This document shows positions 2,975 through 31,292 of a stretch of 64,000 nucleotides of DNA, one piece after another. The notes below the pieces were generated by a model. It saw only the letters and a list, made by a program, of their open reading frames with translations. It made no database searches and was not told the DNA's origin. A program made the translations under genes and the position numbers. Numbering within the stretch: the stretch's first letter is position 1; every line of letters begins with the position of its first letter. The stretch covers positions 1 through 64,000 of the IMG/VR virus record IMGVR_UViG_3300027793_000052, one strand, 5' to 3'.

Positions 2975-3063
2975 AAAATATTCTATTGAAGCGGTGAAGA
3001 AAGTTACATCATTATTATTGAAAACGAAAAACACTTTCATCTAAAATACTCAATAGGTACTTT
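2975..3063 (+). ncRNA. Candidate Ro60-associated (Y-like) RNA, short form
   Basis: TATTCTATTGA/TCAATAGGTA closing stem, GAAAG/CTTTC inner stem, same GAAGCGGT-N8-TTACATC motif. Confidence 0.5.
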
Positions 3064-3169: not shown

Positions 3170-4780
3170 ATGACAAAGTTCAAATCAAAAGCAGTGGAAA
3201 ATTTTGACGGTGGTATTTCTTATACCTTAAACCCATTGGATACATTACGTATCGTGGCAGCATCATCTATCTTTGGTGAACCATCTTATTACAGAGGTTC
3301 TCACGACAAACCATCTAACTTATCTACGTTAAAGACGTATGACGTGTTAGGTTTGTACAAAGACCCAAGTGATACAACTACTGATGTTTTCACTAAGGCT
3401 ATCGACGAGGCTTTAGACTATGACTTCAAGGCAACCCTTGAGTTAGCTAAGACTCTTCGTCACGAACACTTCATGAGGTTAAACCCAGCGGTTATCTTCA
3501 TTAGAGCGTCTCAACACCCAAAGAGGGTTGAATTTAACGAAGCAAACCCAGGTTTGATGAAACAATACGGTTTGGACATTGTTGGTCGTCCTGATGACAT
3601 CACCAACCAATTTGATTACTACATGTTCTTAAACGGTTCTAAGAATGGTTTACCATCTATCGTTAAGAGGACATGGGCTGAGAAGTTGGCGTCTTTCACC
3701 AAGTACCAAATCAAGAAATATAAGTCAAAGTCATTAATTGACTTGGTTCGTATTTCTCACGCACACTCTGAAGTTATCGATGAGTTAATGAAGACTGGTG
3801 ACGTGGCTGTTTCTGAAACTGAAACAACTTGGGAATCACTTAGGTCTCAAGGTAAGACTTGGAAGGAAATTCTTAACACAATTAAGGTTTCACACATGGC
3901 TTTACTTAGGAACTTAAGGGGTATTTTCACTGAGGTGAATGATACTGAAGTGGCTAAGAAGGTTTTAACTGACCTTAAGGCAGGTGTTAAGTTTGGTAAG
4001 CAATTCCCATTCCGTTACTACACAGCTTACAAGGAAATCGATAAGGTTTCTATAAACCACAAGGGTATGATACTTGACGCTTTACAAGAGTGTCTTGACA
4101 TCTCTATCGAAAACTTCCCTAAGTTAAAGGGTAAGGTGGCTTGTTTATCAGATAACTCTGGTTCAGCTTGGGGTACAATGACCTCTGAGTATGGTACAAC
4201 CCATATTGCTGAAATTGCTAACTTATCATCTATCATCACAGCTTTATGTTCTGATGAAGGATATGTCGGTGTCTTTGGTGAAAGATTGAGTTTAAAACCT
4301 GTTTCTAAAAGAGACGGTATTATTACTCAGTTGGAAGAAACTTGTAAGAGAGGTAAGTCTCAAGGACAATCTTGTGAACACGGTATTTGGTTATTCTTAC
4401 GTGAAGCAATCGACACTAAAACTCACTATGATACTATCTTTATTTATAGTGACATGCAGGCAGGACACGGTGGTCTTTACGGTACAAGTGTAAGCCGTGG
4501 TGACGTTCACTCTAGAGGTGGAAGTTATGTAGACGTACTTAAAATGGTACAAGAATACCGTAAGAAGGTTAACCCAAAGGTTAACGTATTCACAGTCCAA
4601 GTGGCTGGATACAACAACTCTGTTGTACCTGAAAACCTTTACAGGGGTTCAGTACTTGGGGGTTGGACTGGTAAGGAAGCCTTATACGCTAGTGAGGTAA
4701 TCAAGACTTGGGATGAAATTGAGTCTAACGACAAGGTTACATCTGAGGTTGAAGTTACTGAACAAGTAGTACAATCTTAA
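3170..4780 (+). CDS. Ro60/TROVE-domain RNA-binding protein (Rsr-like) with vWA domain
   Basis: MALLRNLR, KQFPFRYYTAY, vWA DNSGS and YSDMQ motifs; 536 aa; codon usage (AAC, TTC, CGT) suggests high expression. Confidence 0.9.
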   Translation: MTKFKSKAVENFDGGISYTLNPLDTLRIVAASSIFGEPSYYRGSHDKPSNLSTLKTYDVLGLYKDPSDTTTDVFTKAIDEALDYDFKATLELAKTLRHEHFMRLNPAVIFIRASQHPKRVEFNEANPGLMKQYGLDIVGRPDDITNQFDYYMFLNGSKNGLPSIVKRTWAEKLASFTKYQIKKYKSKSLIDLVRISHAHSEVIDELMKTGDVAVSETETTWESLRSQGKTWKEILNTIKVSHMALLRNLRGIFTEVNDTEVAKKVLTDLKAGVKFGKQFPFRYYTAYKEIDKVSINHKGMILDALQECLDISIENFPKLKGKVACLSDNSGSAWGTMTSEYGTTHIAEIANLSSIITALCSDEGYVGVFGERLSLKPVSKRDGIITQLEETCKRGKSQGQSCEHGIWLFLREAIDTKTHYDTIFIYSDMQAGHGGLYGTSVSRGDVHSRGGSYVDVLKMVQEYRKKVNPKVNVFTVQVAGYNNSVVPENLYRGSVLGGWTGKEALYASEVIKTWDEIESNDKVTSEVEVTEQVVQS

Positions 4781-5309: not shown

Positions 5310-5993
5310 ATGGAAAAAGTAACATTAGAAATTCGAGCCGCTGAGGGTGGTGAAGATTCGAAACTCCTTGTGGAGGACATGGCTGCAGTCTATCTGAAAG
5401 CAGCCAAGAATAAAGGTTTTACCGTAGAGTCCGAACATTGAAGAGACGGACTTGTTAGTATTTAGCTGACAGGTAAAGGGGTTAAGAAATACTTCCAAAA
5501 CGAAGTTGGTTGTCATAGATGGCAAAGAATTCCACCCACTGAAAAACGTGGTAGAGTACATACAAGTACAATTACAGTAGCTTTATTAGATTCCCAAAAT
5601 TATCAGGAGATAGACATCAATATGGATGAATTACGTATTGAAACAACTCGTGGTACAGGTAATGGTGGTCAACATAAGAACACAACAGATTCTTGTGTGG
5701 TTATAACCCATATACCAACAGGGATAAAAGTGGTTAGAGATGGTAGAAGTCAACATAAGAATAAGGACGAGGCTTTAAACGAAATAAAACAACGTCTAAA
5801 TGATTTATACCAACAAAACCATATGGATAAAGTTTCTAAAGAAAGAAAGGGTCAAATCGGTAGTGGTAATAGGGGTTCTGAAAAGAAACGTACCTACAAC
5901 CAAAAAATGGATTTGGTTATCGATCATGAAAGTGATAAGTCTACAAGTCTTAAACAATTCATGAAAGGTAAATTAGAACTATTAATGTGTTAA
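5310..5993 (+). CDS. Class I peptide release factor homolog (RF1/PrfH-like, no N-terminal domain) with in-frame UGA and UAG
   Basis: EIRAAEGGED, HRWQRIPPTEKRGRVHTS (PxT) and GGQ all in one frame; stops at 5439 (TGA) and 5463 (TAG). Confidence 0.8.
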
Positions 5994-14839: not shown

Positions 14840-14941
14840 AGTCAGGTGGCGTAATTGGTAACCGCTATAGGGTTGAGGCGTGCTAACTACCTATATAAAT
14901 TGTTTTTAAACAATGCAGGTTCGAGTCCTGTCCTGACTACA
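14840..14941 (+). ncRNA. tRNA-like RNA, AGTCAGG family copy 1 (aberrant anticodon arm)
   Basis: AGTCAGG/CCTGACT acceptor, CAGGTTCGAGTCCTG T-arm, no 7-nt anticodon loop. Confidence 0.65.
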
Positions 14942-15384: not shown

Positions 15385-15461
15385 AGTCAGGTGGTAGAAT
15401 TGTGATTACACCTTGGGACGAATGTCTAGGAGATACAGGTTCGAATCCTGTCCTGACTACA
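15385..15461 (+). ncRNA. tRNA-like RNA, AGTCAGG family copy 3
   Basis: Same acceptor and T-arm; central hairpin with 4-nt loop. Confidence 0.6.
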
Positions 15462-15492: not shown

Positions 15493-15975
15493 ATGGTACT
15501 AATACTTAACGCTGACTACACACCATTAACTGTGGCTAACTTTAAAAGAGCCTACAGATTAGTGTATAAAGGTAAGGCAGAAATAGTGGTTTCTCATGGT
15601 AAAGTTGATGCTGGTATAATATTGGATAAGCCTTCCATAATTAGATTAATTAAATATGTTTACTTTCCATATAAAAAAGTAACCTTATCAAGGTATAACA
15701 TTTATAGAAGGGATGAACATAAGTGTTTATATTGTGGATCCAAAGATAATTTAACGTTAGACCATGTTATACCAAGAAGTAAGGGTGGGCCAAACAGTTG
15801 GACAAACTTGGTGACATGTTGTATGAGATGTAATATGTTAAAGGGTGATAGAACACCTGATGAGGCAGGAATGGTATTATCACATAAACCATTTACACCT
15901 AATTATTTATATTTTATAAACAAAATGCATAAAATACATGAAGAATGGAAACCTTATTTAATGGATGATAAATAA
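15493..15975 (+). CDS. HNH endonuclease (McrA-like)
   Basis: CLYCG..LTLDHVIPRSKGG..WTNLVTCCMRCN; AGGAGG upstream. Confidence 0.85.
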   Translation: MVLILNADYTPLTVANFKRAYRLVYKGKAEIVVSHGKVDAGIILDKPSIIRLIKYVYFPYKKVTLSRYNIYRRDEHKCLYCGSKDNLTLDHVIPRSKGGPNSWTNLVTCCMRCNMLKGDRTPDEAGMVLSHKPFTPNYLYFINKMHKIHEEWKPYLMDDK

Positions 15976-18303: not shown

Positions 18304-18375
18304 GGGCGTGTCATATAAGGGTTATTATGCGAAGCTTATACCTTCGTCAAGGTGGCTCAACTCCACCCACGCCTA
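18304..18375 (+). tRNA. tRNA-Ile(UAU)
   Basis: CGAAG-CTTATAC-CTTCG; GGGCGTG/CACGCCT. Confidence 0.78.
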
Positions 18376-20081: not shown

Positions 20082-20541
20082 TTATCTTAATGTTGACATC
20101 AATATTCTACCTGATTTAACAGAAGAAGAAAGGGTTAAATTAGGTGGTAATAATATTGATTGGCAAACAAAACATTTTGAATGTGAAATGACCCATGTTT
20201 ATATTGTTGAGGATACAGAAAATAAATTTAGACATTCATTCTTAAAAAACAGAACACCTTATAAATTACAAATAAAAAGATTTGATTGGGAAGAGGTACC
20301 AAAAGAAGAAAGACCGTACCCAAATGCTGATGAAAATTCTTTTGAACACCTTCTAGGTTCTTTTAGGGAAATTAATGTAAGAGTTGAAGATTTAGATTAT
20401 ACAGGAACTTTTACTTTCTATACTTATATAAAACCAGAAGATGAGGGGATTGGTGATGTTAAAAAGTTAAAATGGGTTGAGTTTATTTGTGAAGTTGAAA
20501 ATGGTAAAATAATTTCAATAAAGCGGTTGACAGATGAATAA
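20068..20541 (+). CDS. Hypothetical phage protein
   Basis: ORF track. Confidence 0.55.
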   Translation: MGMFDYLNVDINILPDLTEEERVKLGGNNIDWQTKHFECEMTHVYIVEDTENKFRHSFLKNRTPYKLQIKRFDWEEVPKEERPYPNADENSFEHLLGSFREINVRVEDLDYTGTFTFYTYIKPEDEGIGDVKKLKWVEFICEVENGKIISIKRLTDE

Positions 20542-20760
20542 TAATCCTTATATTTGTATAAGAAATAAAAATACATAACATAAATTTAACATAAGCGTTG
20601 ACAAATAAATAAAACTTTATTAATTTTGTCCATATTTATTTATAGAAGTTGTGGTTCTGATGGGTTTCAGGAACCACCCCAAAAAAGACAGATACAGAAC
20701 GGGGACTGTTTACAACGAAAACCCCACAAAAAAAACTATAAACAAATTAAAACTAAAAAA

Positions 20761-20892: not shown

Positions 20893-20930
20893 AACCCCCA
20901 CAACCGATAAAAAAGTTGTGGGGGTTTTTG
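20893..20930 (+). terminator. Attenuator terminator, tRNA operon 4
   Basis: AACCCCCACAAC/GTTGTGGGGGTT plus T run; competing GGTTGTGG at 20839-20846. Confidence 0.85.
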
Positions 20931-20943
20931 TTTATAGTTATAC

Positions 20944-21025
20944 CCGTAAGTTGAACAGGTGGTGAGTTCCGTTGACTGTAGATCAACCGTTTTAAACTGT
21001 GGGGGTTCGATTCCCTCCTTACGGA
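20944..21025 (+). tRNA. tRNA-Tyr(GUA)
   Basis: GTTGA-CTGTAGA-TCAAC; variable arm. Confidence 0.85.
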
Positions 21026-21045
21026 CAAAAACGTTCATTGAAAAT

Positions 21046-21169
21046 AAAAAGAATAGAAGCGGTGGTATTGGTTACATCGATAATGGATATCAATTTGACA
21101 GCAAATCAAACGTTGTGGGTTCGAGTCCCATGATAAAAAACACCGATATTTTTATTCTCTGTTCTTTTT
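21046..21169 (+). ncRNA. tRNA-Cys-like body closed by a Y-like stem
   Basis: GAAGCGGT-N8-TTACATC motif, D-like hairpin, TTTGA-CAGCAAA-TCAAA, GTGGG-TTCGAGT-CCCAT; no normal acceptor stem. Confidence 0.55.
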
Positions 21170-21175
21170 AAATAT

Positions 21176-21254
21176 ATGGGGTTGGAGGAGTCAGGTTTTC
21201 CTCGCTTGGTTTGGGACCAAGAGACTTGCGTGGGTTCAAATCCCACACCCCATA
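21176..21254 (+). tRNA. tRNA-Pro(UGG)
   Basis: CTTGG-TTTGGGA-CCAAG. Confidence 0.82.
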
Positions 21255-21260
21255 CAAAAC

Positions 21261-21338
21261 GGATACGGCGCATAACGGCTGGTGTACCTGACTGTCTATC
21301 AGGTTTTAAGAGGGTTCGACTCCCTTCGTATCCGCCAA
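21261..21338 (+). tRNA. tRNA-Asp(GUC), CCA encoded
   Basis: CCTGA-CTGTCTA-TCAGG. Confidence 0.88.
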
Positions 21339-21509: not shown

Positions 21510-21600
21510 GGGTCTGTGGTGTGAGTGGTTTAAACCACCTGTCTGCAAAACAGGGATGACAATTAATTTTGTTACGTCAGTTCGAATCTGACCAGACCCT
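21510..21600 (+). tRNA. tRNA-Cys(GCA) with long variable arm
   Basis: CCTGT-CTGCAAA-ACAGG; U73. Confidence 0.82.
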
Positions 21601-21612
21601 CTAAAAAATAAA

Positions 21613-21688: not shown

Positions 21689-22141
21689 TTAACCACCATA
21701 ACAATCAATACCTTTTATGGTTATTGTTGTATCGTTTTTAATTGTAATTTCTGTTTTTTCAGGGAAATATTCCTCATGGGTTAAATCATTACTACACTCA
21801 ACCCTAGGATTGTCCAATTTTATAATAAGTTTATCATCTGATATCACACCTCTAATTGGTGTGTCTAACTTATAATAAACATTACCACCATCATAATCTT
21901 TATGTACTGTTCTTTCGTAAAATATTGAACCAAATATTGAATCTGAAAATACTGATTTTGTGTAATCTATAGTACAATAATAAGAAGTGTTACCACTCAT
22001 AGTACTACGAATTTGACCTTCATATCTATAACTCGAACTAAACAATCCACAAATCAAGGCAATTATAATCACCAAAAATACTAATCCACCGCCTCCACCA
22101 CTAGGTGTTGATGGTACCCATACCCAAAAACCTTTTGACAT
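21689..22141 (-). CDS. Membrane-anchored hypothetical protein
   Basis: N-terminal hydrophobic segment. Confidence 0.5.
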   Translation of the reverse strand: MSKGFWVWVPSTPSGGGGGLVFLVIIIALICGLFSSSYRYEGQIRSTMSGNTSYYCTIDYTKSVFSDSIFGSIFYERTVHKDYDGGNVYYKLDTPIRGVISDDKLIIKLDNPRVECSNDLTHEEYFPEKTEITIKNDTTITIKGIDCYGG

Positions 22142-30868: not shown

Positions 30869-31259
30869 GGGGGTGACTTGGAATTGATTGGCTACATTAG
30901 TTATTGTAAAAGCATGTCGAGACTTGTTTGTAGGCTCGTTAAACCAACAATCAAAATTTTAAATGGCGACATTTTCGCAGACGCTACTGTAGGTCACTTT
31001 GTGACTGAAGGTGCAGAGGTTGTAGCCTAATTAGATTAGGGTACACAACGGGGTTGGATTACCTAGGAACAGAAGTCCAAAAAAGGGTGTTACCACTACC
31101 ACAAAAGGGTAAAGTCAAACATGGAATGTGTCAACTAAGTCCATGGGAGAACTAAAAGATGAAGTTGTATATTTTGGGTGGTTAGAAAACCACATCCTAA
31201 ACATGTAGAAGACTTTAATTCATTAGAACAAGACGGCGGTTCGACCCCGCTCACCTCCA
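30869..31259 (+). ncRNA. ssrA: tmRNA
   Basis: GGGGGTG/CACCTCC-A acceptor with G3-U70, GCATGTCGAG after helix 2, GACGGCGGTTCGACCCCGC T-arm; tag ORF 30965-31030. Confidence 0.92.
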
Positions 31260-31292
31260 CTTTAGAAATTTATTAACCTAAAAATCGAAAAA

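Follow-up and report, generated by a model that had tools for sequence, protein, structure and literature searches.

A candidate Y-type RNA with a tRNA-like module in native arm order, encoded within a tRNA array of a giant freshwater phage

Introduction

Y RNAs share a design in which the ends of the molecule pair, a conserved loop interrupts the resulting long stem, and a variable module lies at its distal end (PMC4201824; 10.1101/312249). In bacteria the design is represented by YrlA (RF02553; S. Typhimurium, M. smegmatis), whose distal module mimics a tRNA (PMC4201824; Wang 2018, PDB 6CU1). Here we analyze a candidate RNA of this kind, encoded by a 124-base gene (21046-21169, + strand) that lies between the tRNA-Tyr and tRNA-Pro genes of a giant freshwater phage (IMG/VR record IMGVR_UViG_3300027793_000052). 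The stretch of DNA analyzed, referred to below as the window, is the first 64 kb of this 317,983-bp viral record, the completeness of which was judged to be 96%. Other genomes and loci are cited by our own labels, a G or L followed by a number.

YrlA and the candidate are alike in several respects: both are linked to Ro60 and have their ends paired in a long stem, both have a 5′ strand containing ..GAAG.. followed about 12 nt on by YUAY, and both contain a tRNA-mimic module with conserved D and T arms. The published signature of YrlA is GNCGAAN0-1G near the 5′ end with YUAY about a dozen bases later (PMC4201824), and these elements correspond to the ..GAAG.. and UUAC of the phage motif described below. 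The two RNAs differ in how the module is attached. That of YrlA is permuted (V, T, closed acceptor hairpin, D), has its Ro stem extending from the anticodon-stem position and lacks an anticodon loop, whereas in the candidate the scaffold takes the place of the acceptor stem, a full 7-nt anticodon-type loop is displayed, and the gene resides 16 kb from Ro60 in a tRNA operon.

The topology of the candidate is that of Yrn1 of D. radiodurans, which tethers Rsr to PNPase. Yrn1 was modeled with its T and D-like elements placed opposite to those of YrlA and a 5-bp stem-loop between them in the position of the anticodon arm (PMC4201824). Yrn1 differs, however, in that it lacks a full D arm and a V region, has only 6 nt in its "anticodon" loop and resembles tRNA less evidently; the phage RNAs considered here, on comparison with the published description of Yrn1, have complete D, anticodon and T arms, a C-U-NNN-A-A loop and scores of up to 59 bits with the tRNA model.

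In the phage systems described to date, Ro60 is accompanied by several Y-like RNAs on the same strand, as it is in the window phage. These systems include phiLo, with Ro60, Yrl1 and Yrl2 (PMC12135203), and phage G and a mycobacteriophage, with YrlA (PMC4201824); the YrlA of phage G was already reported by Chen et al., as cited in PMC12135203. In one published case, a phage Ro60 was found to bind both Y-like RNAs of the phage and the PNPase of its host (PMC12135203). The phage Y RNAs published so far are of the stem-bulge-stem or YrlA type and lie beside Ro60, and none has been described with a native-order tRNA module or within a tRNA array. A 2024 preprint offered the guess that "tRNAs" beside a Ro60-like gene of phage Bas63 are Y RNAs (PMC11482910).

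We judge it likely, at a probability of about 0.7, that the candidate is a Y-type noncoding RNA partner of the phage Ro60 that joins the scaffold of its Ro60-proximal paralogues to a tRNA-mimic effector module in native order.

Results

A recurrent motif marks one strand of a conserved stem scaffold

Three exact matches to GAAGCGGT-N8-TTACATC were found, each on the + strand, at 2672, 2988 and 21056. The first two lie just upstream of the Ro60 gene and the third between tRNA-Tyr and tRNA-Pro, where the original prediction, a reading of the bare sequence, had placed it. Shuffled versions of the 64-kb window contained a mean of 0.01 matches, with 0 of 100 reaching three, and the whole 317,983-bp genome held no fourth copy when one mismatch was allowed.

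This motif is the 5′ strand of a structured RNA scaffold that consists of an outer stem, an asymmetric internal loop (5′ AGCGGN / 3′ [A/U]UAUUC), a 9-bp inner stem and the linker UAC[A/U]UC. The sequence of the inner stem is free but complementary, the N8 segment covarying with the 3′ strand. Because N8 pairs consistently with that strand, two other accounts of the motif were dropped, one in which N8+TTAC forms a D-arm-like hairpin of its own and one in which the motif is a DNA-level promoter.

Starting from each GAAGCGG-N9-TTACNTC in the fetched loci, we sought downstream partner strands comprising a 9-nt complement of N8+U and, 3-10 nt beyond it, a 7-nt stretch complementary to the bases that end in the motif GA (maximum score 16). 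Forty-four motif instances scored at least 15, compared with 3 in reversed-sequence controls, and 24 reached 16, compared with 0; a scaffold in which the 3′ loop ends A/U-A/U-N-C and is followed by UC was present in 56 instances and 2 controls. All three copies in the window scored 15-16 of 16. What the candidate shares with the Ro60-proximal RNAs therefore goes beyond the 5′ motif that had first been noticed to the full stem scaffold, which recurs in dozens of Ro60-adjacent RNAs of related phages. The module enclosed by the scaffold is variable and includes short hairpins of 21-46 nt (e.g., 2983-3056), long inserts of 150-243 nt (e.g., ~2667-2955) and tRNA-like modules. The design of the scaffold is that of a Y RNA.

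The candidate carries D, anticodon and T arms in native order

Positions 21046 and 21169, proposed at the outset as the limits of the element, match the termini of a 12-bp outer stem to the base. Its 5′ strand (21046-21057, 12 nt, ending in the motif GA) pairs at 12/12 positions with its 3′ strand (21158-21169), with one G-U, also in the minimum-free-energy fold; the homologous 7-bp core is 97-98% paired in relatives, and 5/7 pairs have changed on both sides. The stem opens into the internal loop formed by AGCGGU (21058-21063) and UUUAUUC (21151-21157; family [A/U]UAUUC). The former strand, which overlaps the position of the YrlA motif GNCGAAN0-1G (PMC4201824), is a putative Ro60 contact site. 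GAAGCGG is invariant in all class A rows of alignment A1 (see below) and in most motif instances of Ro60 phage records, and TATTCTC is invariant in A1. Beyond the loop, N8+U (21064-21072) pairs at 9/9 positions with 21142-21150, the latter strand having a partner search score of 16/16; in the family, 8/9 pairs of this inner stem show changes on both sides. The candidate thus has the long stem of paired ends and the conserved internal loop by which Y RNAs are recognized.

From the inner stem, the linker UACAUC (21073-21078; family UAC[A/U]UC) leads into the module. This linker is kept in all module types and corresponds to the YUAY of YrlA (PMC4201824); its last 3 nt are able to pair with GAU at 21132-21134. 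A D-arm mimic follows (21079-21091), with a stem of 3-4 bp and GG in the loop, nearly identical in loci L215 and L226, and then an anticodon-arm mimic (21094-21110) with a 5-bp stem (21094-21098/21106-21110) and the 7-nt loop CAGCAAA (21099-21105), in which A33 is 21100 and GCA (positions 34-36) is 21101-21103. A 4-nt V loop (21111-21114) precedes the T-arm mimic (21115-21131), which has a 5-bp stem and the loop UUCGAGU; the Rfam tRNA alignment spans this segment, and the T stem is 98-100% paired in homologues. The T loop on its G-C-rich stem and the GG of the D loop are the tRNA-like D- and T-arm features by which YrlA is defined. An A-rich 3′ linker of 10 nt (21132-21141; range in the family, 3-13 nt) returns to the inner stem. 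The original prediction had read the interior in this same order, D arm, anticodon arm with A33 and GCA, and T arm, and had the motif-bearing stem replacing the acceptor stem; the Y scaffold indeed sits there.

The candidate is not a decoding tRNA. It has no 7-bp acceptor stem, discriminator, CCA context or free 3′ end; AUC/GAU (3 bp) alone adjoins the T arm, and between the module and the inner stem lie the conserved 6-nt linker and the A-rich linker of 10 nt. An A (21100) occupies the position at which tRNAs have U33. The score of 21.4 bits with the Rfam tRNA model is below the gathering threshold of 29, and ARAGORN makes no tRNA call.

Native-order RNAs form a family maintained by compensatory change

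The layout of D arm, anticodon arm, V loop, T arm and scaffold 3′ strand, which we designate class A, is common to ~17 homologues of the candidate, and the composite unit recurs in at least 10 phage records. Nine class A RNAs were aligned with MAFFT (alignment A1). The outer, inner, anticodon and T stems were paired in 87.6% of cells, compared with 69.1% after shuffling (0/500 shuffles as high), and partners slid out of register paired in only 34-50%. Nineteen of the 26 pairs had changed on both sides. In the anticodon stem, 95.6% of cells were paired and all five pairs were compensatory. A1 mis-registers the inner stem of the three sequences with a 7-nt 3′ loop, so that its count for this stem is too low, and it brings the D stems into no single register; covariation was therefore counted with the D stem excluded.

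With A1 as seed, a covariance model (R1) was made and run on whole records. In the window phage's own genome it recovered the candidate at 97.5 bits, the motif copy at 2988 weakly and nothing else; elsewhere it matched G030c/G026c (87.6 bits), G040 (78.3 and 52.6), G002 (73.9), G044 (71.7), G023 (56.2), G016 (46.1) and G041/G042 (42-46). An alignment of 21 sequences fitted to a covariance model (A2), which corrects the inner stem of A1 but leans towards the model, was 91.6% paired, compared with 63.3% after shuffling and 37-48% with partners slid, and contained 151 cells changed on both sides, compared with 48. Across A1 and A2 the anticodon stem was 93-96% paired in homologues. The two alignments agree in direction, and the class A structure is under selection. 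The original prediction would have been undermined by a decayed tRNA-Cys whose outer stem was not kept in relatives; the outer stem of the homologues was instead found to be paired and compensatory.

Members differ in how closely their cores resemble tRNA. Scores with the Rfam tRNA model (threshold 29 bits) were 58.9 for G024a, 50.9 for G043b, 48.4 for G030a, 38.8 for G043a, 37.8 for G024b, 36.8 for L226 and 36.4 for both G024c and L215, with the window RNA lowest among these at 21.4. ARAGORN names several members tRNAs (Lys, Thr, Leu), the window's not among them. The acceptor stem is wholly missing from G024c and G043b, and G043a, G030a and G024a retain 3, 5 and 7 bp of it, respectively.

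Searches in other collections returned little. BLAST of the candidate and of a cluster of three class A RNAs from G024 against GenBank phages gave T-arm-sized matches or none, and R1 found stem-only matches of at most 40 bits, and no class A RNA, in Bacillus phage G. A scan of 596 Gb of prokaryote genomes for the motif combined with a T loop gave 28 matches against a chance estimate of ~30 (20 specified bases, 31 gap lengths). Most lay in GC-rich coding sequence, and only four were real scaffold RNAs. These four loci (L264, L265, L277, L282), on metagenome-assembled genome contigs of Mogibacterium and Lachnospiraceae, contain permuted and anticodon-hairpin scaffold RNAs in dense tRNA arrays; these gut Clostridia contigs are probably phage or prophage DNA.

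A further composite was observed at L218:5429 (G016:88998) and L222, where an anticodon-type hairpin (CUUCUAA) and a T arm come immediately after the 5′ motif, with no D arm or recognizable 3′ scaffold strand. ARAGORN reports it as a 68-nt tRNA-Arg; next comes a tRNA-His whose insert includes GGAAGCGGGA. This element may be decayed, or may be a different composite.

The anticodon-type loop varies in its triplet

Among the 18 members with a 7-nt loop, the positions that flank the triplet are nearly constant (C32, 16/18; U33, 16/18; A37, 18/18; A38, 18/18), and positions 34-36 are variable. The triplets of class A include UUU in several lineages, GUA in G024c, G002 and G044, GUU in two, and CAA, UAA, GGU, GCU, UGA and UUA, with GCA in the candidate. 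Variants with other anticodons, a search for which had been proposed with the original prediction, are therefore present in related phages. Besides the candidate, A33 occurs in one other member, G016:156435 (CAGUUAA).

The D arm and anticodon stem of the candidate have near-identical counterparts in L215 and L226, the loops of which are CUCAAAA and CUUAAAA; nine differences separate the candidate from the L226 module, three of them at loop positions 33-35. Compared with the 22 tRNAs that ARAGORN calls in the phage, tRNA-Cys included, its core is not particularly similar to any. Because the nearest relatives carry CAA and UAA loops and the core is unlike the phage tRNAs, the proposed designation of a tRNA-Cys chimera is a misnomer, and the candidate is better read, from these comparisons, as a tRNA-shaped module whose triplet varies. 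Its outer stem and flanks resemble those of another type of member (L011a/G002), whereas its module resembles that of L215/L226, which suggests that modules have been exchanged between scaffolds.

The tRNA genes of the region have peculiarities of their own. The tRNA-Cys(GCA) at 21510-21601 is 92 nt long with a variable arm of ~21 nt (class II-like) and scores 46.2 bits with the Rfam tRNA model; a long variable arm is unusual for tRNA-Cys. Matches to the tRNA model that ARAGORN does not call (40-48 bits) lie at 14840-14939, 15385-15459, 18304-18375 and 21261-21334. The first of these spans 100 nt, and an insertion or intron is possible; an HNH endonuclease open reading frame (ORF; 15493-15975) adjoins the second. 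In other phages, the class A RNA at L227:1802-1924 (G043; loop CUUUAAA) is called 'tRNA-Stop' with anticodon UUA by ARAGORN, and Bacillus phage G has an annotated 'tRNA-other (tta)' at 411932-412006. Among the suppressor tRNAs apparently encoded by such phages, some may be Y RNA modules.

Permuted sister RNAs share the scaffold

Class B comprises RNAs of L221, L224, L056 (four copies), L217 (phage G), L067, L080, L220 and others, in which the scaffold encloses a small hairpin, a T arm, a closed acceptor-like hairpin and a D arm, which is the permuted order of YrlA. The Rfam YrlA model aligns to them along the whole of the model, although weakly, at 30-39 bits (E 2e-5 to 7e-3), below its gathering score of 69. 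With the candidate (21040-21175), searches at E up to 10 gave no YrlA or Y_RNA match, returning sub-threshold tRNA and Vault RNA alone. Its order of D, anticodon arm, V and T is not the permuted one of YrlA, and the contrast with YrlA that had been drawn at the outset is borne out (Chen 2014, PMC4201824; Wang 2018, 10.1101/312249). The accompanying claim of a different architecture stands in relation to YrlA but only in part in relation to D. radiodurans Yrn1, which had already been modeled in such an arm orientation and with an anticodon-like arm (PMC4201824).

The Vault RNA match is weak (21069-21130, 18.1 bits, E 0.08) and arises through GGUUAC-UCGA and a T-loop-like box; the linker GUUAC[U/A]UCG of the phage scaffold fits the consensus of vault RNAs, cGGUUACuUCga. 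TROVE domains are present both in Ro60 and in TEP1, a vault/telomerase protein. The likeness may be a coincidence.

Scaffold RNAs accompany Ro60 genes

The presumed protein partner is encoded at 3170-4780 (+ strand) and is a Ro60/TROVE protein by its matches to Pfam PF05731 (E 5e-9), phrog_850 "RNA-binding protein" (E 1e-43) and the Ro60 structures of Thermus phage phiLo (9L5Y/9KOP, E 1.4e-8); it has 52% identity to gp540 of Bacillus phage G. Two paralogues of the candidate lie on its strand near this gene, within the 4 kb used as a proximity criterion for YrlA. Y-like RNA 1 (about 2667-2955, +) has the same scaffold (score 16/16) around a 243-nt module and is kept upstream of Ro60 in relatives, and Y-like RNA 2 (2983-3056, +) is a short hairpin-type (YrlB-like) RNA with a scaffold score of 15/16 and an R1 match of 31 bits. 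In close relatives (77-86% Ro60 identity), both copies are retained upstream of Ro60. The 243-nt module of Y-like RNA 1 has no T loop and belongs to no recognizable family; parts of it are kept in L012, L025, L041 and L004.

With up to 2 mismatches, the motif is present in 33 of the 40 Ro60-relative viral records, usually in several copies on the Ro60 strand, and the backwards pattern is found ~0 times. The scaffold usually adjoins Ro60 in these records, and in Bacillus phage G a GAAGCGG...TTACTTC scaffold is found around gp540.

Class A RNAs begin 50-90 nt past the Ro60 gene in four phage lineages (G024, G026, G030, G043). The G024 genome (154.7 kb, complete, with terminal repeats) encodes Ro60 at 103740-102169 on the minus strand, followed by three such RNAs, at 102119-101989, 101970-101859 and 101840-101733. 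Those of G030 and G026 start ~90 nt past Ro60, and in G043 a 566-amino-acid ORF ending at 1747, which is Ro60 (53% identity), precedes class A RNAs at 1802-1924 and 1937-2045. The native-order class is therefore Ro60-adjacent in these lineages. Perfect matches to the published Ro-binding motif (GGCGAAG) are present in G024a, G030a and G043a. In the lineage of the window, the class A RNA resides in a tRNA array instead of beside Ro60; syntenic orthologues with the same outer stem and 5′ flank follow tRNA-Tyr in G002 (Ro60 86% identical) and G044. The candidate is on the same strand as Ro60. Its distance from Ro60, first given as 18 kb, is 18.4 kb when counted from the first motif copy but 16.3 kb from the Ro60 stop codon.

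The candidate is transcribed with its tRNA neighbors

The upstream neighbor of the candidate is tRNA-Tyr(GUA) (20944-21026, +; 19-nt spacer), the same as in the G002 and G044 orthologues. Downstream, tRNA-Pro(UGG) (21176-21255, +) starts 7 nt on, leaving a 6-nt spacer. A sigma-70-type promoter match (TTGACA-16-TATATT, 20527-20554, +; 11/12) heads the operon.

Six freshwater metatranscriptome runs contain the region, as assembled contigs with flat depth along each. In two runs, contigs start at 20579, where RNA depth rises 5-10-fold, and end at 21880 or 22036, with a depth of 36-66 compared with 3-10 in flanking ORFs; in one run the start at 20579 is preceded by library adapter sequence. A third run has a contig at 20654-21145 with a depth of 83, compared with 5.7 for contigs further downstream. 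RNA also covers the Ro60 operon, from 2678/2685, inside Y-like RNA 1, to ~4790, at a depth of 128-255 compared with 0-5 outside, the contigs that begin at 2678/2685 having depths of 128-196. This pattern argues against DNA carry-over. Since the RNA contigs run through the tRNA operon downstream of the strong promoter match, the candidate is transcribed together with the neighboring tRNAs, in agreement with the shared expression that had been proposed.

Several other features of the region may be recorded here. An extended AAGCG(G/T)(A)TTGACA context (2590-2602, 20520-20532, 20593-20603) is common to the -35 boxes that precede Y-like RNA 1 and tRNA operon 4 and possibly marks a phage-specific promoter class. 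A strong G-C hairpin with a T run (20897-20933), terminator-like, lies just upstream of tRNA-Tyr within the transcribed leader, and RNA contigs read through it. Functions in translation rescue are clustered in the Ro60/tRNA region as well, which contains genes for a DnaJ-like protein (171-884; with C-terminal and Zn-finger domains), a 123-amino-acid RF-1-domain protein (ArfB-like peptidyl-tRNA hydrolase; 5622-5993) and a tmRNA (82 bits; 30869-31262).

Discussion

If the candidate is a Y-type partner of Ro60, its action can be pictured as follows. Transcribed within tRNA operon 4 from the promoter at 20527, a step to which the RNA-library contigs lend partial direct support, it would be released by the RNase P and 3′-processing cuts of the flanking tRNA-Tyr and tRNA-Pro, since it sits 19 nt and 6 nt from them. 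Its paired ends would display the loop AGCGGU / UUUAUUC to Ro60, as the conservation of the scaffold and its adjacency to Ro60 genes suggest. With the scaffold at the acceptor end of the L-shape, the elbow and the full anticodon stem-loop would face away from Ro60. Known Y RNAs act as tethers and gates, and by analogy these exposed parts may bind, or keep out of action, a host protein that recognizes the anticodon arm of tRNAs; a synthetase domain, a modification enzyme and an anticodon nuclease are examples.

Several observations weigh against this reading. Binding of the candidate by Ro60 is deduced from its scaffold, and the published Ro-binding motif GNCGAAN0-1G is matched by AUAGAAG of the candidate at 4/6 specified positions, those off the motif lying in the outer stem, where they covary. 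At 16.3 kb past Ro60, the candidate lies beyond the 4 kb of the YrlA proximity criterion (Chen 2014). The association of the motif with Ro60 (33 of 40 records) was counted mainly on records picked for encoding Ro60. One abundant RNA contig ends at 21145, within the 3′ strand of the inner stem, and contigs of flat depth carry no ends or stability of a 124-nt RNA. Finally, certain class A relatives combine an acceptor stem of 5-7 bp with a tRNA score of 48-59 bits, and their modules might be released as real tRNAs.

These points bear on three other explanations. The candidate could be a decayed tRNA gene, such as a tRNA-Cys, with flanks that resemble a Y motif for trivial reasons, as its 21.4-bit score, A33, 3-bp acceptor remnant and lack of an ARAGORN call would fit, along with the canonical tRNA-Cys(GCA) 340 nt downstream. 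We consider this highly improbable: the whole scaffold is intact (16/16), the core is unlike the phage's tRNA-Cys or its other ARAGORN-called tRNAs, the same composite unit recurs across phage records, and four helices are kept by compensatory changes in homologues, covariation by which decay is largely refuted. Less improbable, though still quite unlikely, is that the candidate is or derives from a functional tRNA precursor, whose conserved leader-trailer stem would serve as a handle for processing, folding or quality control that Ro60 might read, and whose core would be excised for translation. Relatives on the same scaffold that score as tRNAs and are named so by ARAGORN, with acceptor stems of 7 bp in G024a and 5 bp in G030a, point that way, and M. 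smegmatis YrlA is itself cut by RNase P and receives CCA (PMC4201824). The candidate has an acceptor reduced to 3 bp next to linkers of 10 and 6 nt, A33 in place of U33, no discriminator or CCA context and a score below the tRNA threshold, in a phage with a normal tRNA-Cys. In most class A members, moreover, 3-13 unpaired nt separate the T arm from the stem, and the 12-bp acceptor/T minihelix measured by RNase P is therefore absent.

The conserved stem might, alternatively, serve independently of Ro60, as a site for a double-strand-specific or phage RNase or as a stabilizer of tRNA-operon transcripts, and adjoin Ro60 because that gene heads tRNA arrays. Many instances do lie directly past tRNA 3′ ends within tRNA arrays, and binding of the scaffold by Ro60 is itself a deduction. 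This account seems to us about as unlikely as that of the tRNA precursor. The design is the generic one of Y RNAs, with paired ends and a long stem that is interrupted by a conserved asymmetric internal loop; GGCGAAG, a perfect match to the published motif, occurs in some members; the permuted members match the YrlA model; and hairpin, long, permuted and native modules occur on one scaffold, as expected of a common protein handle with variable effectors. We favor a Y-type RNA partner of Ro60.

A more specific and speculative proposal, in our view doubtful but less so than either of the two preceding alternatives, is that Ro60 phages deploy a family of Ro60-tethered anticodon-arm decoys whose triplets (UUU, GUA, GUU, CAA/UAA, GCU, GGU, UUA, GCA) track the tRNAs attacked by host anticodon nucleases or other tRNA-directed defenses. 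Such decoys would soak up the nuclease, or bring the nuclease or damaged tRNA to Ro60/exonuclease machinery, and the A33 variants might be uncleavable traps. The frequent UUU, GUA and GUU loops bring to mind the tRNAs targeted by known anticodon nucleases; the sample is small and AT-biased, and the resemblance is a lead only.

Phage Ro60 with Y-like RNAs, tRNA mimicry by Y RNAs and the arm orientation of Yrn1 are already known (PMC4201824, PMC12135203). We did not find described a conserved native-order family with complete D, anticodon and T arms on a Ro60 scaffold, C-U-NNN-A-A loops with diversified triplets on such a scaffold, or Y RNAs residing in tRNA arrays. The candidate and the canonical phage tRNAs (RF00005) have in common the native D, anticodon, T order and a place in a tRNA array, and some of its homologues are called by ARAGORN; besides its missing 7-bp acceptor stem and free 3′ end, its A33 and its low score, the candidate differs in the flanking Y scaffold, which the real tRNAs of the same arrays lack. 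Because standard finders call several class A RNAs tRNAs, including a "suppressor" UUA, phage tRNA inventories beside Ro60 genes are probably inflated.

To our knowledge, the effector recruited by the tRNA-like domain of bacterial or phage Y RNAs is still not known. A scaffold at the acceptor rather than the anticodon end exposes another face of the tRNA, the anticodon loop that is missing in YrlA, and natural variants are to hand, with many anticodons on one scaffold, U33 and A33 versions and acceptor remnants of 0-7 bp. The class A RNAs may therefore provide a handle on what the tRNA mimic binds and on the role of phage Ro60 in conflicts over tRNA cleavage.

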